Assembly: GCA_002269645.1 (NCBI GenBank)
Contig: NIVC01003379.1
Coordinates: 1-64,000 of the forward strand
Direction of reading: 5' to 3'
Length of the DNA stretch: 64,000 bases
Source: Macrostomum lignano
Lineage: Eukaryota
Below the pieces are notes generated by a model. That model saw only the letters and a program-made list of their open reading frames with translations, did not search any database and was not told where the DNA came from. A program made the translations under genes and the position numbers. Of this stretch, positions 4,471-48,949 are shown one piece after another. Within the stretch, counting starts at the first letter, position 1. Every line of letters starts with the position of its first letter.

Positions 4471-5469
4471 GACCCAGGCAGAATAGCAAGCCATGAGGAA
4501 TAGGCTAGGGGGTAGCCAAAGAAATGGACAGGAAAAGTGACTAGGAGGATATGGTCAGGCTAGTGAAACCTAGCCATGGAGTACAGATCAAGAGAAGTAG
4601 GCTAGGGGAGCAAGTTAGGGAGGGTAGGCTAGGCAGAGTAGGCTAATGGCAGTAGGTTTAGGGAGACGAGAGCAAGCTAGGAAGAGCAGTCAGAGAGAAT
4701 AGACTAGGAGGAGACCAAGAAGAGCTAGATTGGGAGAATAGGCAGCCAGGTAGTCAAAGAGTTGGCTAGGGGAAAATCCAGGTAAGTTGACTAGACATTT
4801 TAAAAGGAAATATTGAATAATTTGTTTTGTATGGCTTGCTCTGTGAAATAGCTAAGCTGGCTAGTTGAAAATAATAATAGCTAGTTTAAGCTATAGCCAA
4901 TATGTTATATAGCCAGGGCTTTCTAATTTTCTAATGTACTAGGTAAGAGTACTTAAAAATTTAAGTACTCTGCATACAAATGACCTTGAGGCTACAAGAA
5001 AGATGAAAATCAAGAACTGTAATAAACTGCCAATTTATTAAATAGTATAGTAATCATATGGATAGCAGAATAGGTAGGCAAGGAATAATGCTGATTGTTG
5101 GTCTTATTGGATAACTAGGCCTAAGCTAATATGAAGTACAAATGACCCAACAATATTTTGTTTGATTAAATCTGCTATTTATGCTCCCTCCTGCAAGTGC
5201 AAGATGCAATTGGATTAATTCCATCATTGCATTTTCTGTCAATCACTTGTCAATTTTTTCATTTTGTCAAACAAATTTAAATCTGAGCCGTTTGATTCGT
5301 TAGCTAGCCGGTATAATATACTGGCCCCTATGCTATTTAAATGCATAGCTCAGTATGATATTATCGGGTAGAAATCGTGTCGTCTTGACACACGACATGC
5401 TCGCAAGCCGATATTATTGGTCCCAATTGGTACATCTACTACCGATGATATCGGTGCCACTGGGGTGAG

Positions 5470-6370
5470 CTGCAACATCTTAAGCACATCATCGGTAATT
5501 CTGACAATGTTATCAAAGGTGCAATGGTCTTGTATATAGGCGCACTGATCTTCATTGATAATATTCAGGTTTTCCAGTATAGTTCGAATATTCCTAGCAA
5601 GTATTTTCACATAAAGTTTACCCAAGCATGAGGTTAGACAAATTGGTCTGTAGCTATCTACTTGATGTTTTGGTTTATTAGGTTTGGGAATCATTTTGAC
5701 AATACCCTGTTTCCAGAGCCGCGGGTAGTAGCCCAGAAGGGAGCAGGTATTGAAAAGTTTTGTGATAATTTTGATAGAGTTTAGTCTCAGGCCCTTTTTG
5801 AGAACAATGTTTGGGATATTGTCTGGCCCAGGTGCACCCCCAGACCTGAGACTGCTTATTGCCATAGTTGCATCTATGTTGATGATTTCCATAAGGTAGG
5901 CTAAAGCATCATCACAGTCCGCCTCAGCCTCCTCATTTTTATATTTGAAGTAGGAGATGGCTTGTATAACACCACTATGAGGTTTAAAAATTAGTCATCA
6001 TCGCCTTGCTTAATTGGTCTTTTTCTTGGTAGTCGTCAATCCACAGTTTGTCCATTTCCGGTTCAATGAGTGGTGATGTCAGCAGCGCGTTCATGTCCTT
6101 TTCGCTCGTTGTTAACACACAGAAGCCAACGCCATGATATATGTTCTTGACCGATTGAATTCTGATGTTTGGAAAGTTTATCTTGAGAAACCACTCAAAC
6201 TTGAGTGGATCTTTGGCTTCTGGAGCAGTCTCAAATACTACTGGAGTTATCTTGAATTTAGGTTGGCTGCTACTTTGTTCTTGGTCGGCTATACCAGCTG
6301 CCAGTCTGTGAGTATTTTCTTGGTGAGTAGCTTTGTTATTGTTGATTGCATGGTCAGCTATACTGGCCGC
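5470..6370 (-). mobile_element. Internally deleted LINE copy: ORF1 N-terminal piece joined to an RT N-terminal piece
   Basis: ORF 5350-5892 carries APGPDNIPN...WKQGIVKMIPKPNK...YRPICLTSCLGKLY (RT domains 0-1). An unlisted minus frame at ~5990-6300 reads KFKITPVVFETAPEAKDPLKFEWFLKINFPNIRIQSVK, homologous to LKIAPVVFEMPIEAKDPIKFEHF at ~10960-11030. Confidence 0.75.
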
Positions 6371-6958
6371 GTTTGGTGTCGATATAAGTGTCGAGTTTGG
6401 AATAAAACAATCTATAAAACAGCAGCATTATTCAGTAAAACAAATAGGAGCAATTAAAAAAGTTAAACTAAATAAAACAAATTAAAACAAATCACTTAAC
6501 CCCTGCCAGCCCCGGGGAGGTTTAGATAAGCCTATTGGTTTTGGGGTAGGCGTACGCTCTGAGGGTCGGGGGTAGGGCCCGCTCTCGGCCTGACTGGCGC
6601 TGCTTGCCCGGCTCGATGTACAGTCCTCTTAGTCCCAATTAGGATGACTGTGGAGGATGAAGGATTACTTAAATCCAATTAGGATTTAAGTGTACATTAG
6701 TACACTCCCAACCTGGAAACCTTATTTCACTAGTGACGTAAAAGCCTAATTCATTGGCTGAGGCGCCGGAAGCATCATTGTCATTGTCAATGTCAGATAA
6801 AATAAAAATGTTATATGATGTTAGTAAAATAATTTAGCTCCTAGTAATAATTAAATGAGCAGTCTGGACAGATTTTATCAGGTCGTGCCCGCGACTGAGG
6901 AGCCTCTCCGGCGCCGTCTCGAGGTGAGTTAGTTTTTAGTTTATATGGCTTTTATTGC

Positions 6959-9699
6959 TTATTTTATGGCTTTTCTAAATTTAGTAGTAACGCGTTCTCT
7001 AAACCCTGGTCTGCTCCATTCTTTGAGGTCAATATCGAAGCTATGCACCCCTGTGAGCAGAACTTTTTTGAACCATCTTAGGCCCAGGTTCCATATTCTC
7101 TCTTTGAACCTGGGCATATTCGTAGTTTCATGTACTCGTAGATAGCTAATTTTAATGTACCTGGGGGCACCAAGCGCGATTCTAAGGGCGTGATTTTGGA
7201 GGAGTTGGAATCTCTGGAGGAGAGCATCAGAAGCGTTGACTAGTATGGGCGCTCCGTAGGTCATGCCACTCTCAATGTAAGACTTTGAGGAGGAGAGCAG
7301 CCGAAGCGCCAGTTGCGAAATCCTAGTATTGCGAGTTATTCTCCTCATGGCTTCAAGCTTGGCGATGGTGATGCCTGCAGTCCTGGAGATATGCTGCTTG
7401 TAGCTTAAGTCTTTGTCGAGGGTGACTCCAAGGAAGGTGACCGAGTCATGATAAGGGATGAGATCCTGTCCTAATTTAAGCGGCGGCCTGGCTGGGCCAG
7501 TCGAATAATGGCTCTTAAACTTGAAAAAAAGCTACCGTCTTACTTTTGTTAGGATTGATGGTAATACCTACATCATCTAGCCATTTTTTCAGGACGACTA
7601 GATAGCTGTTCAGCCTCTTAGCCGTCATTACCGACGTCCTGGCACTTGCCCAGACAGCAAGGTCGTCTGCGAACTGACTTTTCTTAACCTTGATGTCACG
7701 CGGGATCGGGATCGAGCTGAAGTATATAATAAAGAGAATCGGTGATAAAACCCCACCTTGCGGGACGCCAGCGGCGGGTCGGAAACCATTGCTGATAGCC
7801 CCTCCAATCTGAATGGAAATCCCCCTATCCTCAAAGGTAGCTGGAGATGATACGGATCACATTGTGAGGCAGGTTGCTTACAAGGATCCTATGCCTAAGG
7901 TAGCTGTGCCAGACGCCATCGACGGCTCCTTTAACGTCAAAGAATACACCAAGGGTCGCATGTCTCCATTGGTTCATTTTTAGTATATCGTCAGTGAGTC
8001 GCACAATGTTGTCAAACGTACAGTGGTCTTGTCTGTACGCACATTGGTCTTCGTTTAAAAGCCCCTTGTTTTCCAAAATCATTCTGAGATTTCTGGCAAT
8101 TATTTTTTCGTAAAGCTTACCCAGGCAGGAGGTTAAACTATTTGGTCTATAGTTATTGATGTCTTGCCTAGATTTCTTAGGCTTTGGGATCATTTTAATG
8201 GTTGCCTTTTTACCAGGCCTTGGGGAAGTAGCCCAGAAGAAAGCTTGAATTAAAATTTTTTGCTATGCGTATTACAGTGTCAGGGCTAAGCCCGCGCTTG
8301 AGTACAATGTTTGGGATTTTGTCAGGACCAGGGGCACCCCCAGTTCTGAGATTTTGTTTCCATTAGTACATCAATGTCAAGGATGTTAAGAATGTCTGAT
8401 TAAGTGTCTTCCCTATCGGGGTCGTCGGGGTCAGCCCTGTCCCGATGGTAGGTGAGAGCTCTAACCATGCTATCATGGGGTCGAAAGATCTCATGATCTT
8501 TGTTGGCCATAACCTCCTCGTAGAGTAGGGAATTGGTGTCAGGATGGGGCTGCATCTGATCATTTAGGAAATCTTGAAACAGATTGGCAGTTTCTTGTTC
8601 AGTTTCAGCGGTAACCCCCTTATTTTCTTGTCCTGTCATTTTCTTAAATCAATCCAGAATTGACGCGGCTCCCTTCTGTAACTCGTTTTGGCAATTTTCT
8701 TGCATAGGTCTTCGAATTTTCTGTACCTGTGCATTCTGATTGCTATCCTAATTTCTTTGGCAGCTTGATTTGCTTGAACCCTAAATGTGTCAGTTCTAGT
8801 TTTCTTAAAAAGTTTTCTAAGCTTTCTGTGCTTAATTTTTTCAATAATGTCAGGAGGGAGTTGTTCTCTAGGATCTCTATCTGGAACTACTTCCTCTATA
8901 GTTTCACGAAATTTTTCCGTGAGCTTATCAACCACGCTGTCAAGGTCTTCAGGGGTAGAGATTCGGGATTGGATCAAATTACACTTTTCAAGCTTATCTT
9001 GAAGGGCGTATTTGAAGGCCTCCCAATCTGCAAGCCATAAGCCTTTTAGTGGTTTGGGGCTATTTTTGGAGCTGGGGTCTAAAGAGACTTTAATAATAAT
9101 AGGTAGGTGATCGCTATCGAGGTCATCACCTACCAGCACCTCACTAATTGAGTTGGCAAGATCTGGGGTGCAAATGCATAGATCCAGGACGTTACCTACA
9201 GTGTTGCCCCCCCCCCATTATTAATTCTGGTGCAGTCACCATAGGAATTAAGGATGAAAGGAGGGTCAGGATGATTATTAAGCCATTCAAATAGCTGCTT
9301 GCCGTGAAAATTTTCTACACAGTCCCCACCCAGCATAAGATGGCGACAGTTAAGCTCTCCAATAAGAAGAGTTCTAGGTTGGGAGAGTAGCTGTTTAAGT
9401 GTAGCAGTGGTAATGCGATCAGGGTTGGGGGCTCTATATAAAAGGGAAATTCTTAGAGTACTACTAGGGTTATTGTTGGGGTTGACAGCAAGGCTTATGA
9501 ACTCATGGTGAGAGTTGTCATAGTACTTTTTGACATTCGAAGTTTTCAAGTTATTTTTATAAGCAATTGCAAGTCCTCTTCGACAGTCAGGGATGTCAAA
9601 TCTAATAATCGCATACCCTTGAACAAAGAACCTGTCATCATTTTTGAGGTCAGTTTCTGAGAAAAGACCAATGTCTATATCTTCATTGTGCAACCACAT
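6959..9699 (-). pseudogene. LINE ORF2 (APE endonuclease + reverse transcriptase), broken into at least 6 ORFs
   Basis: ORFs 9196-9699, 8636-9139, 8400-8639, 7831-8193, 7628-7834 and 6959-7348 are collinear APE/RT fragments. Confidence 0.9.
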
Positions 9700-9793
9700 T
9701 GCAGTTAAGGTGCCCTATGTTTAGGGTAGAATTTAGAGAATTATTTTTATTATTAACAGCCATAGTTCAATTCAAAATTTTTATGATTATTGC

Positions 9794-11060
9794 TCAGGGC
9801 ACGGGTCCGCCTCCGCTCACCGAAGTGGCTTCGGCTTCACCTACCCTGGCTGCAGTTCCACCAGAATTAAGGATAATCGCCAGAGCCTCCGTCAGTGTCC
9901 AGATAGCAAGCTGGCTTACTTCCCAGTCAGTGAGCGGCGGCTCCAAAATAACTTCCATAATTCTGTTGAAGGCTGCGAAAACCACCTCAAGTACAGCCCT
10001 TTGAGGAAAACCCCTCTCACCGTAAGCAGCAGCAGGGGCAGAAACAGTTTGGTTAGGTTCGGTCACGACACGCGCAGAACTGCTTGCAGATGGTGCAGTT
10101 TGATTGGCCGAGGCAGTCGGGGCGACCGTAACCACAGGAGACTGATTGGGCAGCGGTGGCAGCAGCAGCGGCAGCGCGGTTAGAGTAAGCGATTGGTCCG
10201 AGCACCGGTTGGACAGGTTTTGGCCGAGTCGTCTCAGCATAGGAGGCCGGTCCCGGAGCACCAAGTGTCTCGGCTAACTCTTGGCTACCTAATCTAAACT
10301 GGCTGTTGCCCAGCTGCTCAGTTGGCCTAGTCTACTCGAATTGATTTTTAAGAGTTTTAATTACGCTGTGCTCCTTCTCCTGTGGCACACTTATTGCAGG
10401 CAAATTTGGCGCTGCAGCGGCTCTGGGAGTGCCCCAGCCCTTGACAGCGGAGGCATTGAACCTCTTTTACTGGCGGCAGATTGTGACACTCTTCGCACTT
10501 AAACTTCAGCGCGCCTAGCCTAATTCCGTTTTGCAGGCAGGTCTCAACGGTACCCTGGCTTCTGGAGAATAGCCCGATGAACGGCGTTGGCTGCCCAGTC
10601 ACTTTGGAGACGATACGCAGCGCACCATCAAACTGCAAGTTAGCGTATTCCTCCTCAAGATAGGATAGGAGCTCCTCCGCTTCCACGGCAAGAGGAACTC
10701 CTTTAATAATGATTGACCTAACATTAGGCGCTTTCAGTGGCTTGCGAAGCCTGTCATCCGCTTGATGACGCGGCCTGTTGGATGGCAAGCGCCGTGTGAC
10801 TGTTTGCCCTTTCATTTATTTTAATTTTAATGGTGCTGTTAATAATTTATTCATGCCTTCTGGGTTATTGGTAAATACATAGTAGCCTGTGCTGTGGTAG
10901 TGTTCTTTTACTGAGACTACTCTTGTACCCGGAAAGTTCGTTTTTAAAAGTGTTCGAATTTGATAGGGTCTTTAGCCTCGATTGGCATTTCGAAGACCAC
11001 CGGTGCAATTTTAAGATTGGTGCTTGTTGTGTATGAACTTTAAGTTCTATGGTTTATGGG
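9794..11060 (-). pseudogene. LINE ORF1 (gag-like, CCHC zinc knuckle)
   Basis: ORF 10357-10815 has RSIIIKGVP and C-x2-C-x4-H-x4-C. The frameshifted upstream part is shared with the copy at 5990-6300. Confidence 0.8.
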
Positions 11061-11920: not shown

Positions 11921-13897
11921 TCTATACCTATAAAATGAAAACTCTGTGTGTCTGTGTACAATTTTGTTCGCTATGGACTCCCAAACCGCTCAACCAAATT
12001 ACACCAAACTTTACATCCACCCATAACTTACTACGGAGAATGCCTTAGGCTATCTTTAAATTTCCTAGACTCAAGTCTTCCTACCTAAAAGTACAAAAAC
12101 TGCTCAAAATGCGCAATTTTTTCACTAAATCCTCCATAGCGCCGCTCCACTTCTACCGATTCTCTTCAAATTTGACACAGACAATCTTCAACTATTTTGG
12201 CACAATCGTGTAAAATTTCGAGTCTCAAAGTTAATCCTGAACGGCGCTGTGCACTTTAAAAGTTAGGCTGTTTTTTAGCTTAGCAACCACCCCAACCTCC
12301 GCCCGCCTGCCTCTCTTTCCTGATCCCGATCTGGGCCCAGATGTGTAAGGGTTTCAAAATTGACTAACTTTCAGCTGCCATAAGTTTGCTCCACATAAAG
12401 CGATTGACATCAAACTTGGCACAGATCTTCATTGACTCATTCTCTGTCTAAATTTAAAGTTACAACTCAGTAACTCATTCAGAACAGAAACTGTAAGCAT
12501 GTGAAGTTTGTCTGCTTTTTCTGTTGTTTGTGCCACTCACTCACGCATTCCCCCAGAGTCAGAACAAGGGTCAGGCGATAGGGCTGAATGTACATAGCAA
12601 ATACACAGTGTTTTTGGAATAGCTTTGTTTATAGCCTTCTCTGCACCCCGTGGAGAGGCTACGTTTAGCCATCCAAAACAGTTTAGTGAGAAATTCTAAC
12701 CACTGCCCTCTGTATTGTCAAACTCTGCAGCAGTTTAACAGTGGATGGCAAATCGAGGGAATCCAGCATGGTTTGTAATAGCGAAAGATCTATGAAAAGG
12801 CGATGCGATGCAATGCAATACAAGTTATACAACCCTACTAAATAAGGCACACCATGGAAATTGTAGGTTTCTTTTAAAGGTAGTGTGTACATTTTAAATG
12901 GCCTCCTAAGAAATGCGTATTTCATTGGTTGTTAGACTGATGCAGACTGCAGTGGAGCTGAAGATACACAAATTCCTTTCAGGGCTGCAAATTGGCAAGA
13001 AAGATGACGTGATCAAAGCATGAGAACAACGATGAGAGTAGTACGTCCCACAAACTGGCTTTCGAAGCAGGGATCGACAGACTTTTACTTCAAAGCCAGA
13101 TAAAGAATCCAGCTTATGTGCGGGCCAGATGAGAGTGGAAAGGAGAAGGAATAGACTATTAGAAGAGAGGAGAGGCGAGAGGGGGATAAGAGAAAACATG
13201 GAAGATAAGAGGAGAGACAAGTGGGGAGGAGAGAGCAGAAAAGAAAGGAGGAAGAAGCGAGAGGAGGGGAGAAGGGAGGGAGAGGAAAGAGTCAAGGTGA
13301 GAAGAGGGGAGAGATGAGACAGAGGATCGATGAGAGGAGAGTAAAGAAGAGTGAGAAGAGAGTAGAGATGAGAGAGCAGAAAGAAGATGACAGAGTCAAG
13401 AGGAGAGGAGAGATTAGAAAGGAGAGAGTAGAAAGGATAGAGAAGAGAGGAGATAGGAGGGGGAGAGAGGAGTGAGAGGAAAAGAGAAAGAGATAAGAGA
13501 GAGGTGTAAGAAGAGGGGAGAAAGAAGAGATCAGATTGTAGAGAAGAGACAGATGAAAGGAGAGATGAGAGAGTAAAGATGAGAGATAAAAAAGGTGAAA
13601 AAAGAGTGCAGAGAGACGAGAGAAGATAATAGAGGAGAGAGAGTATAGAAGAGGGAAGAGAAAAGAAGAGAGGAGTCAGAAAAGGTGAAAGAGAAGAGTA
13701 CAGAGGAGATAAGTGAGAGAACGTATAAGAGAGTAAAGATGACAGATGAGAGAGCAGAGATGAGGGTGAACAGACGAGAGATGGGAGAGTAGAGAGAAGA
13801 GATTATAGAAACCAGAGGAGAGACAGGGAGAGAGAAGAGAAAATAGGAGAATGAAGAGGGGAGAGAGTAGAGAGGAGAAGAGAGATGGGAGAGGAGA

Positions 13898-13957
<60 letters not shown>

Positions 13958-15177
13958 GAGCAGAGAGAAGCGAGAAGGCGAGAAGAGATAAGAGAAAAAA
14001 GATAAAAGAAGAGAAAGGAGAGATATAAGAGCAGACGAGAGAGAAGAGAGGTGACGGAAGAGCCGAGCGACGAGGAGACAGAGAGGAGATAAAACAAGAA
14101 AAGAGATGAGAGGAAAGAGGTGAGGGAAGAGACGAGAGAAGAGGGGAGAGAGAAGAGATAAAACAAGAAAAGAGATGAGAGGAAAGAGAGAGACGAAAGA
14201 GGTGAGGGAAGAGACGAGAGAAGAGAGAAGAGAGGAGAGAGAGAGGAAAGAGTAGAGAGGAGAGATGATAGAGTAGAGGAGAGAGTTAAGAGAAGAGAGA
14301 AAAGAATAGAGAGGACAAGGAAGAGACGAGAGAAGAGGGGGAGAGAGGAGAGAGGAGAGGAGAGAGAAAAGAAGAGGGAAGAAATGAGATAAGAGATATG
14401 AAAGAGAAAAAAGATGAGGTAATATACGAAAGAAGATGGGAGAGAGGAGAGAGGAGAGGAGAGAGAAAACGAAAGAGGAGAGAGGAGAGCAGAGAGAAAA
14501 CGAAAAGTAGAAAGGAGAGAGGAGAGGAGAGAGAAAAGAATAGGGAAGAGATGAGATAAGAGATATGAAAGAGAAGAGAGATGAGGGAAGATACGAAAGA
14601 AGATAGGAGAGGAGAGGAGAGAGAAAACGAAAGAGTAGAGAGGAGAGAGGAGAGGAGAGAGAAAACGAAAAGTAGAGATGAGAGAGAAGAGAAGAAAGAA
14701 AACGAAAAGTAGAGAGGAGAGAGAGAGAAAAGAGTAGAAGAGAAGAGACAAGAGATAAGATAAGAGAGATGAAAGAGGAGAGAGATGAGGGAAGATACGA
14801 GAGAAGAGAGGAGAGAAGAGAGAGGAGAGACGAGGGACGAGAGAGAAGAAAGGAAACAGAAGAGACGATAGAAATATAGAAATAGAAAGGATCCAAGAGA
14901 CGTAGGGAGAGTCAGGGGGAGGCCAGAGTTTGCCAACACATGTTTTAGAGTCAGACAGACATTGCCTGACATTCTTCGGAGTACCCCAGCCAACAATATC
15001 AATGTTTGCCTCAAACCCTAATTTTACACGAGTGTGCTCCATTTTATGTCTACCCCTATCCTACGAACTATTAACAAGTTTTTGTTTGTGTATGGCCTTA
15101 GATTTCAGAATACATGCAAAAGTGGTTCCCAGGATTGGAATTCCCCGGGTTCAAAATCCGCGGGTTTCAACAGCTTG
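11921..15177 (+). mobile_element. Non-autonomous Helitron
   Basis: 5' end A|TCTATACCTATAAAATGAAAACTCTGTGTGTCTGTGT is typical of non-autonomous Helitron heads. Degenerate 3' end: GC hairpin (CCCGGG..CCGCGGG) followed by CAACAGCTTG|T, with CTTG in place of CTAG. Confidence 0.6.
13125..14900 (+). repeat. 1.8-kb polypurine (GA-rich) low-complexity tract including a pure (GA)n run
   Basis: Almost exclusively G/A on the + strand; it generates the spurious S/L/F-rich minus ORFs. Confidence 0.95.
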
Positions 15178-18100: not shown

Positions 18101-19721
18101 AGCGCTTCGTGCCCAGAGGGCCAAGGACCCACATGGACCCCACCTGTAGCCAAGGTGCAATAGTTGGTCACTCGGTCATGGTATGACCGAGTGGCTGCCA
18201 CCACTCTATGTGACCTGGCGCACCTGGATCTTTCTACCAGACCTCTCGAGGCTAGAGCCCCGCCTGGGATGGTTACCAGGAGATTTAGGCTAACAGGGGA
18301 GACACACGCAGCCGAGTACAGGGACTCTGCTTGGGGCATGATCGGAAACTCTGGGCTCAATCTGGAGGATTTCTCAGCAGGGGATCCTTTGTGGCTGTGA
18401 GCGAGGCTGACTTGCGACTTTGATTACTAAGAGTAGTATGAGGCGAACATGTACTGTCTATAGTTTAGATTGCTTAGGGCGAAGGGACGCGTTAGCATGG
18501 GGTTTCAACCTTCCTACTGCCATTCTGTGCCAAGACTCGCTAATACCCTCTACTGCACGCACTCACGGACCCGCGGCACGCACTCGCACAGGCGGGCTTT
18601 GCACGGAGAGAGGCCATTAGCTTACCCAAACTTCCCTATGCTTTGCCACCCCGGAAGAAAGGCTTAACAAGCCATGAGTGAAATGATGGTGAAAGAGTGA
18701 ATAATGATGAGGTTAGTTAATAGTTAATAATTCGGCCCTTAGGCAAATAATCAGGCAATTAGGCGGCTTCACTATTGAGTAAAAATACAGCAAAAGGTAC
18801 GGTATCACAACTGGCTCAGCTCTCTAATCAGACAATGGACAAATAAGCAAATGCAATTAGAGCACAAATCAGTAACAGGAACTTACCGGCAGCTGCACAG
18901 AGAGAGAGAGAGAGAGAGAGAGGCGGAGTGACCGAGGGCGGCTGTAGGCTGCAGTCAGGCGGACAGTGAAGCGGCGATGCGCTGAAGCGACGAGGCGCTG
19001 GTGTAGATCAGGCGAAGCTGATGATGCTGGGTGGTGTCAGACCGCTGGCCGATAGGCGAGCTCACTTGGGGAGCTGAAGATAACTTGGCGGTAACAGACC
19101 GCGGACCGGCAGGGATTCGTCTTATAGACGAATGGGTCAGAACTCAGTCTGACGGCAAGTCTAAAGAAAGACTAGGAGCCCGAAGGTGGGCCAAAGTTGA
19201 GTATTCTCACTAGCAATCTACGCCCCCCGTTGGGGAGCCAAAGAAATGCAATACAAGTTTTTTAATAAGCTAAATGTATCCTTGAAATCTTAAAAAATCT
19301 CCTGTCAAACCTTGTAAGCCTTGACATGTCAGTAATTCCCCCCACAAGCTTTAACATATCAACTTCCCCCCCCCCTGACATATCAGCAATGCCCCCAATA
19401 AGCCTTTAAAATCTAAAAATATCTGTCAACCTTCTAACCCTAATCCTAACCTAACCCTAACCCTAACTCGGACACTGGGAGACTGATACTGTATTTCGGG
19501 AGACTAATACACTTCTGGGAACCCGATACAGTTTGGTGCATCATACTCCCAGGTTAGGGTTTGAAGTGTATGTATCACCCTCAAGGTGTATTAGTCTCCC
19601 TCTTTGCTTTTTCACCTTAGGGTTATCTATGGAGTACACAGAACATGTAACTACACAACACTATGGAGTGCTAGTGCTACTGTTACTATTAGGTTTACAT
19701 AGCGTCACATAAGGTGACATT

Positions 19722-20143
19722 GGGTTAAATGGGGTTAGGGTTAAATATGGTTAGGGTTAAATAGGGTTAGGGTTAAATGGGGTTAGGGTTAAATGGGGTT
19801 AGGGTTAAATAGGGTTAGGGTTAAATAGGGTTAGGGTTAAATAGGGTTAGGGTTAAAAAGGGTGAGGGTTTAAAAGGGTTAGGGTTAAAAAGGGTGAGGG
19901 TTTAAAAGGGTTAGGGTTAAAAAGGGTGAGGGTTTAAAAGGGTTAGGGTTAAATGGGGTTAGGGTTTAAAAGGGTTAGGGTTAAATGGGGTTAGGGTTAA
20001 ATAGGGTTAGGGTTAAATAGGGTTAGGGTTAAATAGGGTTAGGGTTAAATAGGGTTAGGGTTAAATAGGGTTAGGGTTAAAAAGGGTGAGGGTTAAATAG
20101 AGTTAGAGTTAAATAGGGTTAGGGTTAAATAGGGTTAGGGTTA
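19722..20143 (+). repeat. Telomere-derived minisatellite, ~16-bp unit TTAGGGTTAAATAGGG
   Basis: About 25 tandem units with variants (TTAAATGGGG, TTAAAAAGGGTGAGGG). Confidence 0.9.
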
Positions 20144-21579
20144 TCGATTTCGACGGGGATCGCTTCTACATTTATCCAAGAGTACAGGGGGTCAAGTCCG
20201 GCCGAGATCCATCAAAATTAAGGGGCACTCGGAAATCACTTTCGTGACCGATGTCTGGGCAGGTGAGAATTTAAGAAGTGATAGAGCATCTATCCATGCG
20301 TCGGATGCTGTTTGTCTCATCAATAGATGTGCTACCGTTTCCGGCTGGCAGCCGTTCCCGCAAAGTGTAATTGCCCCCTCACCGTTTCTGCGCATGGAGG
20401 TACGCTGGACACTTTGAGTGCGATTAGCCAGCCTTCCCCTTGGTATTTCCGGACGTTCTTGGTGTCGTTGGAAAGCTCTAGTGATGCTCTATCGAATTGC
20501 ATTCAACGGAATTGGGTGCCACCTGCTCGTGGTAGATTCCGCCGCGACAGACGGACTTCCGGAAAGTGGCCAGTCAATCCCTTAGACCCCGAAGTACAAA
20601 ATTTTGGCAGAGACACTTTGAAAAAAACAAAGACACCTAGTCCGATGTATTTCGACACGTAGAGTCGGAATTTGACGGTCGCGAGACTGTCCGACGCAAG
20701 CTAAACTATCTTCAGCCGTTTTACACCTAAGAAACCCGCTACTTGCTACCATAAGTAGTATAGAAGTTTTTAGCTGTTCTATTCTGACTGGCCGACCAGC
20801 CCACTATGTAGTCCAGGCTGTGCTCGCTCTAACGACGCCACACACGTCGCTAGATGTGCTTCCGCTGTCGACTGGCAGCCGTTGCCACAAAGTGTAATAA
20901 TTCCCTCAATATTTTTAGGGCTAGAGTTGCAAGTTTCCAAGGCTCCAGCTTCGGCGCTATTGGCGCCAAAGTGGCGCCGCTACCGTCAGACGATTGGGTA
21001 TTTATTAAAGTGTGTATAGACGCTCGCGTCGCGCCGGTAGATGCCGCCGTTCTTTTTTGGCAACGCGCCAAGTAAAGCGTAATAATTCCCTCAGTCGTTT
21101 TATAGCGTTTGCCTAGGCTAAGTATTGCACAACAGACTGGTCCCATAGAGTGACCTATTGACCCCGGATTTCGACGGGAATCGCTTCTACGCTTCTACAA
21201 AATACTTAGTATCCAACTTCTAGGTTGCTCAGGCTGCTTATTAGTAGTAGTAGCGTAACTGCGACGTCATTAAAATAATGCAAGGCTGCCAACAGAATAA
21301 CCTTTTCCCTCCTATATTACCTGCTGTTGGTGTACAGCGGACATTTTGATGCTACAGGCATATGTTTATTCATTCACTTTCGGACAATGGGCGATGGTAA
21401 ATCATAGTGGTCAGCTAGTTATATTTAAACAGTTAGCGCAAAATTAGAGCTAAGGAGGGGCGAAGGCCGGATGTACGGATATTGACGATGGATAAACATG
21501 CAATTACACTATCTGAACTTATTTTTGAGAAAGTGTTTATATGCTTATGTAAATGCATACAATGCATAAAATGCAGCTT

Positions 21580-22423
21580 TTAAAATCGGCTTGTTTCAAC
21601 GTATATCCAGGCCTTGTTGGCCGCGAGTGCCAGCGAAATGATGTCGGCGCTTCTTAGCCGTTGAATCTGATTGCGCCCTGAGTAGAAAAAATATTAAGAA
21701 AAGAAACCGTCGTTTACATTCTGCGTATACCATGCTACTACCAAAGCAAGTAAAGTATAATTAACAAGTGTAAGGCAAAGAATCTAAACTCACCAACTGC
21801 TTGGCCATTAACGAATGTGCCATTGCTGCTCAGGTCTTTTATCACCGTCACGGGAGTGCCGCCAGCGTTATGCTACAAAACAACGGATAACTTGGTTCGA
21901 TTGACTCATCTTGACTCATCCGATTCTCAGGAGTCCCGACTGTGAAATAAGACTTACTCTTTTTATCTCCAAATGCCTTCGTGAGTACAGAAGGATATTG
22001 GGATCATTTCCTTCCATCAACACTTCCGTACATGATATGTCCCGACCAATGGTGACGACATTTTCGTCATTCTTCAGAGCTGCGGGGTTACGAATGAATG
22101 ACACTTTTATGTCTACTTCTCGATGATCTTCCTCGACGTCCTCGATGTCTGGCACATCACCATCCATACTCACTAGGCCCGAGTATTACCAAATGTCTTT
22201 TATACCAAGGTACCAAACGCACAAATGAGCAAAATGACTCACCGACGTTTTTAAAAAAATAAGGCAAAGCGAATAACCACCCATATGTCGGAGAGGTTGA
22301 AGCCACAGCTTCACTTGTGGTGCACTGTGGTGCGCTTGTGGTGCCAACTCCTGGTGCGTCACCTGTGCTGTCTGCAGCTGCCACCATGACAGCTGCGTCG
22401 GCCAGCAAATCTAGCGCGGAATT
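21580..22423 (-). CDS. Spliced gene for a stand-alone Chk2-type FHA domain protein (~147 aa from ATG 22387), no kinase domain
   Basis: Exons 22423/22387-22243, 22079-21958, 21872-21794 and 21677-21580 have GT-AG sites and compatible phases (1,0,1). Product: ...PTYGWLFALPYFFKNV|ALKNDENVVTIGRDISCTEVLMEGNDPNILLYSRRHLEIKR|HNAGGTPVTVIKDLSSNGTFVNGQAV|GRNQIQRLRSADIISLALAANKAWIYVETSRF*. FHA motifs GR, SxxH and NGTFVN are present, and the GRDxSC and IALSLxxNK features are Chk2-like. Confidence 0.85.
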
Positions 22424-22964
22424 CTAAAGCATCCGATCTTGTTACTATGTTACTTGTTACATGTTACTGGATTCGATAAACATGTTCCTGGATTCCATAA
22501 AAATGTTACTGGATTTTTGGAAAATGCCCTTTTAGAACAGACTGATTTTGGCATATCTTTGAAATGTGTCACTTATAAAATTAAAAAGCAAATTTAAAGC
22601 AATCATGTATAATAAAAATATTTAAATCTTTCCTGGCTACTCTGGTTTCCTGGTATTTTGTCTCTTCTAGACCTGAGCAGATCAAAGCACCTTCTAAAGT
22701 AAATTTTAAAAATAAAGTGGATGTTAAAAGTAGCTTCTTAACTAGCAATCTACGCCCCCCGTTGGGGAGCCAAAGAAATGCAATACACGTTTTTTTAATA
22801 AGCTACAGGTATCCTTGAAATCTTAAAAAATCTCCTGTCAAAACTTGTCAGCCTTGAAATGTCAGTAATTCCCCCCCCACAAGCTTTAACATATCAACTT
22901 CCCCCCTTGACATCTCAGCAATGCCCCCAATAAGCCTTGGAAATCTAAAAATATCTGTCAACCT

Positions 22965-23090
22965 TCTAACCCTAACTCTAGCCTAACCCTAACCCTAACC
23001 CTAACCCTAACCCTAGCCTAACCCTAACCCTAACCCTAACCCTAGCCCTAACCCTAACCTAACCCTAACCCTAACCTAAACCTAACCCTA
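22965..23090 (-). repeat. Interstitial telomeric-type tract (CCCTAA)n with variant units
   Basis: About 20 units including CCCTAG, CCTAA and CCTAAA variants. Confidence 0.95.
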
Positions 23091-23639
23091 ATCTGCATCC
23101 GAGGGGCTCCTGGCGGACTAACCCCCTCACGAGGGGGTTCTCGCGGCGAGGGGCTCTTCGCCCCTTACCTTGCGAAACGCCCCTCCAGGGGGCGCGAGAA
23201 GCCCCTCGCCATGTGCGAGAAGCCCCTCACCATAAGAATACATGTATTTTTTTCTTTTTTTTTCCGCAATACAATCTATAAATCCTTTCGTTTCTCTATC
23301 AACCTAAGCCACTATTTGAGGTCCCTTGACCTCCGTAGGCGGTCAGGGGGGAATTAACCCAAAAAAGCTTAATAGAGTGACATTTACTTTCGACGCTTTT
23401 CCAAGGTATGAGATAGAGGTCACCTTGTCATTAGGATTTTCTATACCATCCTAATCCGAGATCTCAGGGTGAGACTTTTCCGATTAGGTGAGATTTACCT
23501 TTAGATACGTTTTTCGGGTATGAGATAGGGGTCACATCTAACATATATTATACGGACTATCTAATCTTACAATCCTACAGTGAGATCTCAGGGTGCCTCT
23601 TTTCCAATAGGGTGAGATTCAGATTTAGATCTGAATTAT

Positions 23640-25395
23640 CCGCTTATCACTCTACTGAGCGACGATATTTAGTAGTCAAGATGGGCTTAAAATTATGAGG
23701 GGCGAAATGCCCCTCTTGAGGGGCAAATAGCCCCTCCTATCTCTACTAAAACACTTTTATAAGTTCCTTTCCTATATTCTCTGAGTAACAATTGACTTTG
23801 AACACATTTACATAACTGAAAGTCCGACTACCAAAACCTAGGATGGCCAGAAGCTAAAGTGAAGTAACGTCATATCAGTATATCGACCTTCTAAGAAAGT
23901 GTACTGATTTTCTAGAGTAGATGTCTGGAGCATTATTCTCTCTTCAGATTTCAGAAATAATATAAAAAGACAGGGAAATTTATATCATATCTTTGCTTTA
24001 TCGCAAGAGTGCGCTCAGTCTTTTTATTACGCTTATCACTCTACTGAGCGACGATATTTAGTAGTCAAGATGGGCTTATAATTATGAGGGGCGAAATGCC
24101 CCTCGTAAGGGGCGAATAGCCCCTCATATTTCTACTAAAATACTTTTATAAGTTCCTTGATATATTCTCAGAGTAACAATTGACTTTAAACATTCTTATA
24201 AGAGGCAATAAAGACAGTATAGTCATGACATGCCAGATATTGCATGTCCCCTGAAAAACTTACTACTCTGACATAGGCATACGTCGGTTCTCCTGACGAG
24301 GGTGAGAGTTACCTTCAGGACTCTCAAACGTTCATTGCGCTACTCATAATAAAGTGTATAACATGGACTTGTATGGTTAAGAACAAGAGCATGCAGTTGA
24401 ATGCCCCAATAGTACCTAACCTCTGAGTTGAAAATCTTACTCCTCACTATATTGGCAAACATCAAAGAGCAAATAAAAGCCAAGTCGAGATTCACTTGGC
24501 CGCATAGAAAAATGTTTGACAACTACTTAGGATATTTTTTCGCTTTAGGAGGTCTATACACGATTTCAGAATTTTTACACAACTGAAAGTCCGACTACCA
24601 AAACCTAGGATGGCCAGAAGCTAAAGTGAAGTAACGTCATATCAGTATGACCGAGTCCGCTCAGTCATTTTGATACGCTTATCACTCTACTGAGCGACGA
24701 TATTTAGTAGTCAAGATGGGCTTATAATTATGAGGGGCGAAATGCCCCTCGTAAGGGGCGAATAGCCCCTCATATTTCTACTAAAATACCTTTATAAGTT
24801 CCTTGATATATTCTCAGAGTAACAATTGACTTTAAACATTCTTATACGAGGCATTAAAGACAGTATGGTCAAGACACGGCAGATATTGCATGTCCCCTGA
24901 AAAACTTACTACTCTGACATAGGCATACGTCGGTTCTCCTGACGAGGGTGAGAGTTACCTTCAGGACTCTCAAACGTTCATTGCGCTACTCATAATAAAT
25001 TGTATAACATGGACTTGTATGGTTAAGAACAAGAGCATGCAGTTGAATGCCCCAATAGTACCTAACCTTTGAGCTGAAAAACTTACTACTTAACTGTATG
25101 GGCAAGCATAATAGAGCGCACAACAGCCAAGTCGAGATTCACTTGGCCGCATAGAAAAATGTTTGACAACTACTTAAGATATTTTTCGCTTTAGGAGGTC
25201 TATACACGATTTCAGAATGTTTACACAACTGAAAGTCCGACTACCAAAACCTAGGATGGCCAGAAGCTAAAGTGAAGAAACTTCATATCAGTATACCGAC
25301 CTTCTAAGAAAGTGTACTGATTTTCTGGAGTATATGTCTGGAGCATTATTCTCCCTTCAGGTTCTAGAAATAATATAAAAAGACCGGGAACTTTA
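23640..25395 (+). repeat. Three imperfect direct repeats of a ~650-720 bp unit with twin GAGGGGC/GCCCCTC hairpins
   Basis: CGCTTATCACTCTACTGAGCGACG starts at ~23641, ~24030 and ~24677. Copy 1 is internally deleted and copy 2 lacks the tail shared by copies 1 and 3. Confidence 0.9.
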
Positions 25396-25842
25396 CATTA
25401 ATTAGTTTCAAATTAAGTAATCGAATTTATTTCTTGGAAATGCTGCGACATTCTTATCTCATTATCGACCATGTTATTTTTTTCGAAGCATGGCACACTA
25501 GGGAAAGAAAATCTTCAATTATCAAACCAAAAAGCAAAATAATAAGCAAAATAATGCGGAAAGCAAGCCAATAAGCAAAATGATAAGCAAAGCAACACAA
25601 AATTGTAAGCAAAGTAAAATACGAAGTACTAAGCAAACCAAAAATTAAAAAAGAAAATATAAGGAGGTCAATGAAAAAAATTATGAGCAATAAATCAGCC
25701 ATGAAGTAATTAAGTATTAAGCAACTAAGCAATTAAGCTATTAAGTAAAGAATTGTAAGTGATCTAAATCGATTTTTTAAGTATGTTTAAGCTTTATCTT
25801 GTATTGATTTCTGACGGGAATATTTTTAGAACGAGTTTTATT

Positions 25843-29510: not shown

Positions 29511-29648
29511 CTGGATACGGGGGAAGTTGTTTGAATTTTTGTTACAAAGACTACTCCTTAATCTTAGTTGCCTCCACGCTTCTTGTACGTAGAAGCGTGG
29601 CCCCTCAGCCCCTCACGACTCTAACCCGCCCTGAGCCCCTCAAAGGAC

Positions 29649-29777
29649 AACCCTAGCCCTAACCCTAACCTAACCCTAACCCTAACCTAAACCTAACCCT
29701 AGCCCTAACCCTAACCTAACCCTAACCCTAGCCTAACCCTAACCCTAACCCTAACCCTAACCCTAACCTAACCCTAA
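29649..29777 (-). repeat. Interstitial telomeric-type tract (CCCTAA)n with variant units
   Basis: About 21 units. The first 53 nt are identical to 23038-23090. Confidence 0.95.
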
Positions 29778-30609
29778 AGCATTGAAATTTCAGTAATTCT
29801 CTCTAAGAGTCATTATAGCACTACTACAGCATTATAGCGATTCCCTGCAAGCCTCGACATCGTAGGAATTCCCAAATCAATCTCTTAACTTCGACATGAA
29901 GCTTCTTTTATTTTTTACATTACGGTTTTTTTATCAGCGATCCCTCCCCTGAGGAGGCATCAAATAATGTAACAAAAAGTTTTTAATAAACTACATGTAG
30001 CTTCTGGCTTTAGCCTTGAAATCTCATTTATACCCCAGTGAGCCTTGACATCTCAGCTATTCCCCCCGTAAGCCTTGACATGTCAGCGATGGCCCCCATA
30101 AACCTTGAAATCTAAAAAATCCCCTGTTACTTTAACCCAACCTAAAGCCTTGAAATCTCAGCAATTCTTCTCCCCTAAGCCTTGACATTTTAGTGATTCC
30201 TTTTTTAAGAATCACAGCACTATAACGATTTCCACCAAGCTTTGACATCGTAGCAATTCCCAAATTAATCTTTTAACTTCGACATGACTTTTCTTTTATG
30301 TATACATAGTGCTACTTTTATTTTTTACATGACTCTTCTTCTATCAGCGCCCCCCCCCGTGGCGAGCCAACAAAGAATGTAATAAAAAATTGAGTAAAGT
30401 ACATGAACTCTGAAGTAGCTTCTGACTTTTGCTTTAACATCTCAGAAACCCCCCCCCCGTAATCTTAGTTATTCTCTGAGAGCCTTGACGTCTCAGTTTT
30501 TCTCCCCAGCACAGCATTATAGCTGCATTTAATTTTTACATGACACCTTTCATGTCTGACATGACGCTTCTTTTATTCTACCATGATGCTTCTTAATTTT
30601 TTAAATGAC

Positions 30610-31030
30610 ACTTTCATTAGTCTTTAAATGAGGCTTCTATGATTTTTCATGACGCTTCTATGATTTTTACATGATGTTTCTATGATTTTTTATATGACGC
30701 TTCTATGATTGTTTATATGACGCTTCTATGCTTTTTACATGACGCTTCTATGATTTTTTTACATGACGCTTCCATGATTGTTTACATGACGCTTCTATGA
30801 TTTTTACATGACGCTTCTATGATTTTTTACATGACGCTTCTATGATCGTTTAGATGACGCTTCTATGATTTTTACATGACGCTTCTATGATTTTTTTACA
30901 TGACGCTTCCATGATTGTTTACATGACGCTTCTATAATTTTTACATGACGCTTCTAAGATTTTTTACATGACGCTTTTATTATTTTTTACATAACGCTTT
31001 TATGATTTTTTACATGACGCTTCCATGATT
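30610..31030 (+). repeat. Tandem repeat, ~22-24 bp unit ATGACGCTTCTATGATTTTTTAC
   Basis: About 18 directly visible units; no unique spacers. Confidence 0.92.
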
Positions 31031-44760: not shown

Positions 44761-46675
44761 CGGTTGACGGTCGTTTCGTCTGCCGCCAGTTCGTCTGCCA
44801 CCCTTTCGTCTGCAAGAATACGATACAGTCGTTTCGTCTGCCAACGAATAGTAAAGTTTTAATAAGTGTAAGTATATGTCAGTTGTTGTCATTAATTTGA
44901 GATTTGAGATATTTGAGATAACAGTGATTAAGATATCGGGAACATTTCTTAGTAGTAATGACTTAAACGAGTAATTTCTGAATATTTTTGTTTATATTTA
45001 ATAAACTAAGCAATTGGACGAATCCAATGCATTTTCGTCATGATATGGCATGACGCCATACCATCTCTTAACCGTCTCAAAGCTTCAAAGCTCAAAAGCA
45101 ATTAGTCGAGTTAGTATTATTTTACTTATTAGAATTCGTTTACTTTTTTTGGACAATACCGAAGATTCAGTGTATTTAAATGCACAAAGTGTATAGCGGC
45201 AGCCCGTACAACAATCCGATGTCGGTCGACGTCTATCTGACCGTCCGATACCGACCAATAATAGACGTCGGAGGACGTCCATAGCCAAAGGATACTTTAC
45301 AGTACACCGACGTCGACTTCGACGTCGGATTGCGACGTTTCTGAACGTCTGAAACGGACGTACTCAGACGTTTAAATACCAGTAAGATTTGCGGCTTGTG
45401 CAAAAAAAGAACAAAAAAACATAGACTATTCACGAAAGTTTCCAAACCTTACTTACGAACGAGCAAGTGTGAAAAGAAAATGTAGAATAATAGGAGCGCA
45501 ATTTTATTATAGTGATTGTTTGCAACTTAATGGTGCAGTAGTTTTAAATATTCGCTATCCGCATCAGCTTTAACTTCAGAATCACCCTGACCTCCAGCCG
45601 CAGGAACGCTAGCAGAGGACGGTTGTAACGGACGCTTGGGCTCACCGATATGCTTTAGCACATCACCGATCACAGATGAGCATGATTGTTTGCTGCTCAT
45701 TTGTCTTTTAAGCGTGTGCTTGGACACAATCGCGTCTGAAAGATTAAGGTTCATTTAAAATTATTATTAAACGTTACAATTTAAAATTTAATCGATTCCC
45801 TTTTTTCTGTGTCTGCCTAAGTTTGCACATTTAATACAAAGTTTAGCAACGGTTACCTTCAATTGCAGCCAACATTTTCTTAGGAATCGCTTGCTTCCCT
45901 TTCCGTCCTCGTACATTAAAGGACCGCCAAACTTCAGACGGAGCAATTCGGATAAAAATGTCTTTGATTTAGCGGTGCCAATCAGTAGAGCTAGCATAGC
46001 GGGCCGTTCTTTTCTGAATGGAAACACAACAATATCCACTTATGTGACAGTGCCAAAATTATCCCCACTTAAAATCAAGCAATACTACATTGTAAATTTG
46101 TCAAAATACAAAACAGTGTACTCGAATGCACTATTTATGATCTGAGACTATTACGATACAAAAATGTCAAGGATTTTGGTTTGTAAAGGTAATTTTAGCG
46201 AAAAATTAATTACCAGTTCCTCATAAAGAACGCTATCGTCGTCCAGGTCCTCTCCAAACTTGATGACAGCATTAGATGTTTGAAATGGAATGCGTTTTGC
46301 CAAGACAGACTCCGCTACGCTACTACTGGATGTAGCATCTGTTATTCGCGAAGACAGGAGACTATATAGTTCATTCTGTTTTTTTTTCAACGTCATTGAT
46401 ACGGAGCAGAACTTTCTGAAACCACTCTGAAAAAACAGGGTTTAGTTTGCATTTATTTTATTAAAATAAGCTAACTAGATAGTTTACAAGTTAAACCCCT
46501 CCCACCCTGCTACTATCTCCACAGCCCTCTCTAGTTTTTTACAATTTAGAAAAAAACAAACTTAATTTTAATTGTAGCCATTTGATTGCCATTTTCTTGA
46601 ATATCGCCATCAGCTAAGCTTAACGGATCATGTTGTTGGGTAGTTTCCCTCTGCTTTGTGTATTACTTGCTACAA

Positions 46676-47335
46676 AGATCTCCGGGGAATCAAGGCCGGT
46701 GACACGTGAAGCTCCAGGCCGCGCAGAGTTGCCTGGTAGTGAGATCTCCGGGGAATCAAAGCCGGTGACACGTGAAGCTCCAGGCCGCGCAGAGTTGCCT
46801 GGTAGTGAGATCTCCGGGGAATCAAAGCCGGTGACACGTGAAGCTTCAGGCCGCGCAGAGTTGCCTGATAGTGAGATCTCTGGGAATCAAAGCCGGTGAC
46901 ACGTGAAGCTCCAGGCCGCGCAGAGTTGCCTGATAGTGAGATCTCCGGGGAATCAAAGCCGATGACACGTGAAGCTCCAGGCCGCGCAGAGTTACGTGAT
47001 AGTGAGATCTCCGGGGAATCAAAGCCGGTGACACGTGAAGCTCCAGGCCGCGCAGAGTTGCGTGATAGTGAGATCTCCGGGGAATCAAAGCCGGTGACAC
47101 GTGAAGCTCCAGGCCGCGCAGAGTTGCCTGATAGTGAGATCTCCGGGGAATCAAAGCCGATGACACGTGAAGCTCCAGGCCGCGCAGAGTTGCCTGATAG
47201 TGAGATCTCCGGAGAATCAAAGCCGGTGACACGTGAAGCTCCAGGCCGCGCAGAGTTGCCTGATAGTGAGATCTCCTGGGAATCAAGGTCGGTGTCACGT
47301 GAGGCTCCAGGCCGCGCAGAGTTGCCTGATTGAGA
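46676..47335. repeat. 66-bp tandem repeat (~10 copies) inside the transposon accessory gene
   Basis: GAGATCTCCGGGG recurs at 46741, 46807 and onward; the unit is open in several frames. Confidence 0.95.
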
Positions 47336-48949
47336 GACCGCTGGAGATCTCAACTCTTCAGAACAAGGGGCGACGATTTTCGCTCTCTGATCAGCGGCTG
47401 AAAAAAACGGGCCCATTGCAAAAATTATGCTTCAGAAAAGTGAACGATAGGTGAACGGTATGCACAAAAATTAAATAGAATGTAAATGAAATCTAAATAG
47501 ACAAACCGAGTTGCAATTTAAAATATCGCCATAGCTTAACAGAGTGGATCCCATTTCTGAAGACGGTCGAACAACAGAATCCGAATTGGCTTTGTTAGGC
47601 TTCTTTTTCTTAGCTGGAGGTTGATATTCTTCAGCAAGTCGAATAGGACACCCGCGACGTCGATTGCGTGTGTCACTTTCACTCTCGCTGAGAGATCCGA
47701 TTCGAGCAAACTTTTTCTCTAGATGCCGCAGCTTGTCAAGGTCATCTAAAAGTAAAATCAGTAGACTTTATTTTAGTGCAGCATCATAGGTTAAAAATAT
47801 CGTTAGAGTTAGAAAAACAAATTAAATATTCGTAGAAAAGCATATTAGACAGTTAATTACCATCGGCAAGAAGCGCACTAATTTTAAATCTATCCCAATC
47901 AGAACTGGGTTGCACACCGTCGCGGCAGAAGTCGTAAAGCTTTTTATACAAGTGTCGAGGGGGGAAAAATGCGCTGCCTTCACAGATCCAAGATGTTGGC
48001 ACAATGGCAGTAGGCTCGCCTTCTTCTTCGCAAAACTCGACGAGAGAAAACATCTGCAATTTTTTTTATTTTGTGTTATATTAAAATATATCAAAATAAA
48101 TTATTAATTCAATAACTATAGAGCAAATGTAAGAGAATTTTAAAAAATGGTTTTCCATAAAGTATGCAGCAAAGTACATGGATAGTAATCAGAGGTTTTC
48201 CTTGGTACAACGAACAGCTTGGACTTCACACGGCTAAAGTCAGAAATTTTAATACCTCTTTGCAAACTAGACAGCCGATAAATGCCTACTTTTGATGATT
48301 CAAAAGGCAGATGGTAAAAACTTTCACAAACTGAGAATTGGCGATAGACAAGCAGGGTTTCACAGCGTGCTGAATTATGAAGAATGTTTACTAGCTTACA
48401 TGCTTTAGGCTTGCCAGCTTTATTATTGATAACAAAAAATGAATCGCATTGCCTGAGCAATAAATTTATATTGATTGTAAGTCTGACTTGTCTAAACATG
48501 GAATAATCCCTGCAGAATTCAGGCAAATCATTGGATCGATAATAATGTTGACTTGACACAATAGGAAAAACTGGAGTCTCAATAATTAGCCTGCCAAGAC
48601 ATGGATCTGTTTCTGATAGCCTATTTGCAAGTTGCTCTAAAGGCAGATGTGGCGATCTCACAGCTTTTTTAATGTATCGGTTAAAATTTTCAAACATAAA
48701 TGATGAGAATTTTTCAACAGTTCCATGGAGTTTATAGTCCTCTATTAGGTGCTGTAAGCCATGAACAACTGGACTATAAAAGCTTATCCCAAAGAGATCA
48801 TTGACACAAGAGTAAAAATCGTGTAGAACCTGGTCTAAGATAAGATCTTGATTTCCAAAAAAAATATTTGTGTTGAGCAATACAGAAATCAAATGCAGAC
48901 ATAAAAACATATCCATTAAACGTGGCTTGTCGGCTGGAATAAAACTAAA

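Follow-up and report, generated by a model that had tools for sequence, protein, structure and literature searches.

A kinase-less gene for a Chk2-type FHA domain in the flatworm Macrostomum lignano: origin and possible function

What does it mean when a gene carries a complete Chk2-type FHA domain and then stops, with no kinase behind it? The question is raised by a four-exon mini-gene on the minus strand of a 64-kb stretch of Macrostomum lignano DNA, which is referred to here as the window and which supplies all coordinates. Such a gene could be the 5' end of the ordinary host Chk2 gene, the inert relic of a duplication, cargo of a transposable element (TE), or a working gene in its own right. 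Judged from its sequence, it is a diverged and truncated paralogue, distinct from the host Chk2 gene. Whether this duplicate of the 5' exons of Chk2 has in addition been selected as an FHA-only modulator of Chk2 signalling is a question on which, taking origin and mode of action together, we stand about evenly divided.

Scripted splicing joins the four exons into an open reading frame (ORF) of 147 codons that ends in TAA, as an earlier note on this DNA had claimed, with the acceptor of exon 2 now refined to 22079. Exon 1 (22387-22243, 145 nt) starts with the ATG at 22387, 13 codons after an in-frame TAG, and ends in phase 1 at a GTGAGT donor. It codes for a Ser/Thr-rich N-terminus plus YGWLFALPYFFKNV, and its product is homologous to the N-terminus of the full-length host Chk2 described below (P.VGT...YGRLFSL) and to human PWARLWALQDGFANL. 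Intron 1 (22242-22080, 163 nt, phase 1) is followed by exon 2 (22079-21958, 122 nt), which reads ALKNDENVVTIGRDISC...YSRRHLEIKR and holds the GR and S..H motifs of phosphothreonine (pThr) binding. Intron 2 (21957-21873, 85 nt, phase 0, donor GTAAGT) separates it from exon 3 (21872-21794, 79 nt, HNAGGTPVTVIKDLSSNGTFVNGQAV), which holds the NGT motif, and intron 3 (21793-21678, 116 nt, phase 1, donor GTGAGT) leads to exon 4 (21677-21580, 98 nt including the TAA at 21582-21580), where GRNQIQRLRSADIISLALAANKAWIYVE is followed by the non-homologous residues TSRF and the stop. All six splice sites match the consensus, with pyrimidine-rich tracts before the acceptors. A candidate polyadenylation signal, AATAAA at 21365-21370 on the same strand, lies about 210 nt past the stop and is a sequence pattern only.

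Two in-frame acceptors are available to exon 2. The one at 22079 gives a product of 147 amino acids, and the one at 22172 shortens intron 1 to 70 nt and gives a product of 178 amino acids with 31 added acidic residues. On sequence grounds the acceptor at 22079 (ccccgcAG followed by CTCTGAAG) fits better, because its pyrimidine tract is better than that at 22172, because it avoids a 31-residue insert found in no Chk2 protein, and because the tblastn match with the host Chk2 sets in at 22077.

The identity of the product as a Chk2-type FHA domain is solid. It matches the Pfam FHA family (PF00498) with E=1.4e-12 and 48.3 bits, the curated cut-off being 20.7, which bears out the complete FHA domain that had been read from the letters. 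Its top sequence match in the PDB is the human CHK2 FHA structure 1gxc (E=3.9e-9), followed by longer CHK2 constructs, whereas the matches to Rad53, Dun1 and Mek1 are 4-5 orders of magnitude weaker (about 1e-4). Furthermore, the alignment with CHK2 extends N-terminal of the Pfam core into a stretch that is specific to Chk2 (YGWLFALPYFFKNV against PWARLWALQDGFANL). The AlphaFold2 model is all-beta, with a mean predicted local distance difference test (pLDDT) score of 73.6, about 90 in the core, and 30 disordered residues at the N-terminus. Foldseek matches this model best to human CHK2 in 3i6u and 1gxc (root-mean-square deviation 1.4-1.6 A; template modelling score 0.87 to 1gxc), and among the 133 PDB matches at E<=0.001 all 50 listed are FHA-domain structures. 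The pThr-binding residues are kept: R61, S81, H84 and N106, in their GR, S..H and NGT contexts, are the equivalents in the alignments of R117, S140, H143 and N166 of Chk2.

Two parts of Chk2 are absent, as the earlier note had also stated. Direct reading of the 147-residue product finds no SQ or TQ dipeptide, and the host Chk2 sequence VGTQ, some 20 residues before the FHA domain, is aligned with VGTT in the mini-protein. Regular-expression searches for HRDxKxxN, DFG, APE and DxWSxG found no kinase motif in the six frames of the window, where the sole match to a kinase pattern is a stray GxGxxGxV at 34660 that adjoins a stop codon. Similarly, tblastn with six Chk2 proteins (human, host and four others) gave no match to the kinase part anywhere in the window. 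The TAA of the mini-gene stands four codons past the end of its homology to the host Chk2.

Could these exons still be the ordinary 5' end of the full-length host Chk2, with its kinase exons outside the window or past a very long intron? The window reaches just 21.5 kb downstream of the mini-gene, and long introns exist in this animal, whose longest transcripts span tens of kb (PMC5730564). However, no kinase exon turned up in those 21.5 kb, not even in the search made with the host's own protein, and the mean intron length in M. lignano is 1.1-1.4 kb (PMC5730564). The in-frame TAA directly after the FHA domain and the AATAAA behind it also speak against a longer gene, as does the lack of any GTRAG donor in exon 4 or the following 280 nt. 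A DHYDLPSPIVRK-like segment near 21410, which the earlier note had offered as a possible route to kinase exons, was considered as a remnant of the following Chk2 exon and rejected. Its frame differs from that of exon 4, its score when aligned locally with the linker of the host Chk2 is no better than chance (p=0.2 against shuffles, the best alignment lying elsewhere), and a longer query gave merely a gapped alignment that crosses stop codons.

In addition, a distinct full-length Chk2 already exists in this species, the kind of host gene that the earlier note had suggested looking for. When HMMER was run exhaustively against 1.84 billion representative proteins, a library clustered at 50% identity, the top match was the M. 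lignano Chk2 protein P0001 (UniRef A0A1I8I977), which has 468 amino acids with an FHA and a kinase domain and is 55% identical to the mini-protein over residues 25-144 (E=3e-22). The remaining Chk2 proteins are at most 45% identical to it. When the host Chk2 is used as a tblastn query, the exon 2 region (22077-21955) is matched at 58.5% identity and exon 3 at 77%. A neighbour-joining tree built from the FHA regions of 17 Chk2 proteins pairs the mini-protein with the host Chk2 and gives the mini-protein the longer branch. As a separate full-length host Chk2 is present and only 55% identical, the mini-gene is taken to be a diverged paralogue and not the host gene, and we consider its being the start of an ordinary Chk2 gene highly improbable. 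The public model P0001 itself looks imperfect: it has no start Met, about 6-8 residues are missing exactly at the position of intron 1 (…LFSLR, then DLKEDE…), and its kinase domain is interrupted by a probable retained intron, an insert rich in Arg, Gly and Ser (WQSRARPELGPPRSG…RAE).

The introns indicate how the copy was made. Recomputed from the protein, the exon ends of human CHEK2 fall at c.319 (phase 1, in codon E107 after FANL), c.444 (phase 0, after RIFR) and c.592 (phase 1, after SRNK); the corresponding splice variants are named c.319+2T>A, c.444+1G>A and c.592+3A>T (PMC6767104, PMC8123864). Intron 1 of the mini-gene, between FFKNV and A, has the aligned position and phase of human c.319/320, and intron 2, between LEIKR and H, those of human c.444/445, between RIFR and E, so that both coincidences put forward in the earlier note hold in the alignment. 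The human c.592 intron (NK, then VFVFFD) is absent from the mini-gene, in which NKAWIYVE is contiguous, and human CHEK2 has no counterpart of intron 3, a phase-1 intron that splits the Gly codon of AVGRN. Models of host Chk2 isoforms (P0273 and P0104) break exactly after HLEIKR, as the mini-gene does at intron 2. They place the next boundary near YIE, before FDAILQ, which is where the homology of the mini-gene ends (...YVE, then TSRF and the stop).

Because two ancient intron positions are kept, these sequences indicate that the mini-gene arose by duplication at the DNA level, retroposition being excluded. A processed pseudogene would be an intronless copy that ends in the remnant of a poly(A) tail, whereas three introns with consensus sites are present here. 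The simplest reading of the sequence is that the duplication took in the 5' exons only, that is, the N-terminus and the FHA domain. A breakpoint, or later decay, would then lie in the intron after the FHA exons, and the frame would run on for the four codons of TSRF to the stop; the position of this breakpoint near an exon boundary is judged from the host Chk2 protein models and not from parent DNA. M. lignano has undergone a recent whole-genome duplication (PMC5704211, PMC10733133). By its sequence the event that produced the mini-gene appears far older than that duplication, because the copy is only 55% identical to the host Chk2.

If the copy is this old, has it been maintained? In neutral simulations that started from the coding sequence of the mini-gene and were conservative in that they used substitutions and ignored indels, the ATG, the ORF and the six splice dinucleotides survived together in 4.4%, 2.5% and 0.8% of cases at 20, 25 and 30% amino-acid divergence, respectively. 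The differences between the mini-protein and the host Chk2 are also unevenly spread. They affect two of the 21 alignment columns that are common to at least 80% of the other Chk2 proteins and five of the 34 that are common to at least 60% (15%), against 38 of the 59 variable columns (64%). The retained exons show none of the lesions of an unprocessed pseudogene, and the ORF is intact, although the copy is truncated relative to its parent. Because the ORF, the splice sites and the pThr-binding residues are all intact despite this divergence, the sequence suggests, though not conclusively, that the mini-gene has been under purifying selection in the past.

These same observations bear on a more modest explanation, in which the mini-gene is an inert relic: an unprocessed partial duplicate of Chk2, in other words a truncated pseudogene, that is still open by chance and is either unexpressed or without effect. 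At 55% identity to the only parent known, a neutral copy should show stops, frameshifts or broken splice sites: the simulated survival of such a copy, indels ignored, is 1-4% at 20-30% branch divergence. Moreover, all the canonical pThr-binding residues are kept, the conserved columns differ far less often than the variable ones, and six of six splice sites match the consensus. On the other hand, the region is dense in repeats, with dispersed repeats and tandem arrays around the locus, the mini-gene has no counterpart among annotated or collected proteins, and a C-terminal read-through such as TSRF before the stop is typical of a duplication breakpoint. The mini-protein also evolves faster, having changed five family-conserved residues where the host Chk2 has changed one, and an intact ORF would be unremarkable if a closer, unseen parent existed. 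An inert relic is a serious possibility, to which we give somewhat less than even weight.

Further observations also weigh against a selected and working gene. In reciprocal counts the host Chk2 changes just 0 of 19 and 1 of 30 conserved columns. The five conserved residues changed in the mini-protein include the NNDE loop, which has become SADI, and one conserved Lys is now Ala. The mini-protein is less identical than the host Chk2 to 14 of the 15 other Chk2 proteins and never more identical, and an accelerated branch of this kind fits relaxed selection as well, as far as sequences can tell. Moreover, a closer full-length paralogue could be hidden in the 50%-identity cluster of P0001, in which case the copy would be younger and the argument from constraint would therefore weaken or collapse.

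Searches for the product in protein collections point in the same direction, each within its scope. The mini-gene is not among the GenBank proteins of M. lignano, an annotation that left out transcripts overlapping repeats (PMC5730564). An exact look-up of ten alternative models and the exon-2 ORF found none of them in a collection of 15 billion proteins; the same look-up has no record of the host Chk2 models P0001 and P0273 either, and the collection may miss M. lignano transcripts, the cluster of P0001 having one member (UniRef/MetaClust). A word-index search with the 147-residue product gave nothing at E<=1e-3, and a profile search returned proteins of at most 240 amino acids, missing the 468-residue host Chk2, with no short close relative among them; both searches speak only to short, near-identical proteins in that collection. 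Lastly, it is purely from analogy with Chk2 that we infer pThr binding and dominant-negative activity.

How might a selected FHA-only modulator act? Activation of Chk2 requires that T68, a residue of its SQ/TQ cluster, be phosphorylated by ATM and then bound by the FHA domain of another Chk2 molecule, which permits trans-autophosphorylation (PMC4296918). A free mini-FHA domain would bind the pThr motifs that are normally bound by the FHA domain of Chk2, namely the ATM-phosphorylated TQ sites of Chk2 or of mediators. Lacking both a priming site and a kinase, the mini-protein would trap phospho-Chk2 or mediators in dead-end complexes, and these complexes would tune, probably by dampening or delaying, the dimerisation and activation of Chk2. 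Alternatively, the mini-protein could act as an adaptor. By analogy with Chk2 biology, the function of a checkpoint decoy is plausible.

A precedent for this logic is provided by kinase-dead or truncated CHK2 used as a dominant negative, in which the FHA domain binds the phosphorylated SQ/TQ cluster domain with no trans-phosphorylation (PMC4296918), and the same is proposed for the mini-protein. However, the dominant-negative proteins are engineered or mutant versions of one gene, whereas the mini-protein is encoded by a separate, diverged locus. In a more specific form of the proposal, an expressed and selected natural dominant-negative or buffer would provide a stand-alone FHA 'cap' on phosphorylated TQ sites of Chk2 or mediators and would raise the threshold for arrest or death in neoblasts and the germline; we regard this version as rather unlikely. 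The animal in which it would act is very rich in transposons and became polyploid recently, and M. lignano is known for its high radiation tolerance.

Should the mini-gene prove to be expressed and functional, evolution would have turned the phosphopeptide-binding module of a core kinase of the DNA-damage checkpoint into a modulator or inhibitor of that very kinase, encoded by a gene of its own. RNA interference and irradiation assays exist for M. lignano, a model for stem cells and regeneration in which the idea of a modulator is directly testable, and transgenesis is available as well (PMC5730564). If the mini-gene is instead a relic, it would be an ordinary by-product of a duplication-rich and repeat-rich genome, and its sole use would be to mark an old partial duplication and the conservation of CHEK2 intron positions across bilaterians.

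Comparison with known systems shows that the mini-gene combines known things, which are the Chk2 family, partial duplicates and stand-alone FHA proteins. With the Chk2/Cds1/Rad53 kinases, including M. lignano Chk2 and human CHK2, it shares a Chk2-type FHA domain in sequence and predicted fold, together with the N-terminal beta-strand extension (W/Y-G-x-L-x-x-L); with human CHEK2 it shares in particular two intron positions and the R, S, H and N residues of pThr binding. Unlike these kinases, the mini-protein has neither a kinase domain nor an SQ/TQ cluster, ends four residues past the FHA domain, evolves faster and has SADI in place of the NNDE loop. TIFA is a small stand-alone FHA adaptor that is not derived from Chk2 and has a phospho-acceptor threonine of its own for head-to-tail oligomerisation. 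Like the mini-protein, it consists of little beyond one FHA domain (roughly 150-185 amino acids). Unlike TIFA, the mini-protein has its closest relatives among Chk2 proteins and carries no TQ site. The mini-gene also resembles the unprocessed partial duplicates of M. lignano in its retained introns, its early stop in unrelated sequence and its repeat surroundings. It is, however, far more diverged, at 55% amino-acid identity, than copies from the whole-genome duplication, and nevertheless has no disabling mutation in the part that it retains.

The repeat surroundings raise the question of whether a transposon was involved. The earlier note had proposed capture at the DNA level and a role in TE counter-defence. 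On such a view, a fragment captured by a TE, whether Helitron-like, Pack-type or associated with telomeric repeats, would serve as a checkpoint decoy that shields the element or its host cell from Chk2-mediated elimination. Chk2 reportedly responds to transposon-induced damage in the Drosophila germline (Klattenhoff et al. 2007), and the window is rich in TEs. The mini-gene itself lies in a 2.8-kb segment flanked by two telomere-like arrays in opposite orientation that point towards each other. One is a (CTAACC)n array upstream of the gene (22966-23091, reading TTAGGG on the gene strand), and the other is a tandem array of 26 copies of the 16-bp unit GGGTTAAATAGGGTTA (19722-20143), about 1.4 kb past the stop. 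There is also a 262-bp dispersed repeat at 22741-22999, 354 bp upstream of the ATG, which contains sub-repeats of 30-35 bp (…GACATGTCAAGGCTT…) and is mentioned as context only; its second, direct copy lies at 19209-19467 (92.7% identity, with no similarity beyond the repeat). Both copies adjoin an array of the TTAGGG type.

Set against this, no terminal inverted repeats other than the telomere-like arrays are present round the mini-gene (target-site duplications were not searched), and a Pfam search of 18 neighbouring ORFs (3.4-36 kb) found no TE protein domain within about 5 kb of it, its only matches being to the decayed LINE described below. No second copy of the mini-gene or of its unique flanks occurs in the window. 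The 262-bp repeat is minisatellite-like, dispersed and also found in other arrangements; it is probably a dispersed minisatellite or a TE-end family. Finally, 55% identity to the host gene speaks against recent capture. The proposed DNA-level capture thus stands as far as copying at the DNA level is concerned, on the evidence of the two ancient introns, and finds no support as far as a transposon is concerned. An ordinary partial gene duplication suffices to explain everything that is seen. The mini-gene is a host gene duplicate among repeats and not demonstrable transposon cargo. The counter-defence role has no structural evidence in its favour and is unsupported, and we rate TE capture as very unlikely, although genome-wide copy data could revive it.

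Several smaller observations concern these repeats. A supposed third copy of the 262-bp repeat at about 29.6-30.1 kb was rejected, as it consists of minisatellite sub-repeats only (30012-30118) in a different arrangement. Further interstitial telomere-like arrays, (TTAGGG)n variants of 35-130 bp, are found at 19434-19467 and 29649-29777. Fluorescence in situ hybridization (FISH) of M. lignano chromosomes reported no interstitial telomeric sites (PMC5068713); arrays as short as these (35-130 bp) would escape FISH. GC-rich palindromes (GAGGGGC…GCCCCTC) adjoin the telomere-like arrays at 23100-23260 and 29600-29648, one example having 20-nt arms at 23145-23164 and 23191-23210, and their position suggests one repeat family with a telomeric-repeat end.

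Across the whole window, Rfam finds no RNA family. The TE coding sequence nearest to the mini-gene belongs to a decayed long interspersed nuclear element (LINE; non-LTR, that is, without long terminal repeats) on the minus strand (5350-10815). Its coding region is split over several ORFs, with a clear RVT_1 match (7831-8193) and sub-threshold Pfam matches to Exo_endo_phos (9196-9699) and RVT_1 (5350-5892, a 180-amino-acid fragment). A CT-rich low-complexity stretch of 1.5 kb (13531-15042) shows strong GC and AT skew and spurious Ser/Leu/Phe-rich ORFs in three frames. Upstream of the mini-gene, a unit of about 647 bp is repeated in tandem (23638-25398); 24007-24654 matches 24653-25299 at 95% identity, and partial further copies are present. 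Two more tandem arrays are a repeat of about 66 nt coding for SGNSARPGASRVTGFDSPEISL units on the minus strand (46670-47416) and a 23/45/137-bp array (ACATGACGCTTCTATGATTTTTT) at 30559-30999.

The far end of the window holds the remaining TE sequences. A pol fragment of an LTR retrotransposon on the plus strand at 49-51 kb (region 48140-51062) comprises the tail of a reverse transcriptase, an RNase H and an integrase H2C2 zinc finger, past which the frame is broken, and it adjoins a decayed DUF4218-type transposase fragment on the minus strand (48140-49045). An intact DUF4218/Transposase_21-like ORF of 677 amino acids (677-699 amino acids) is found on the minus strand at 59544-61577. It is 100% identical to the M. 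lignano GenBank protein BOX15_Mlig016445g1, whose record is on contig NIVC01000293.1 of assembly GCA_002269645.1. Insects, fish, cnidarians and echinoderms have relatives of it that are about 30% identical. Behind it on the same strand come a Ser/Ala-rich tandem-repeat ORF (58332-59396) and a DUF4806 ORF (57564-58142), and the whole segment from 57564 to 61643 looks like a young CACTA/EnSpm-like element that has been annotated as a host gene.

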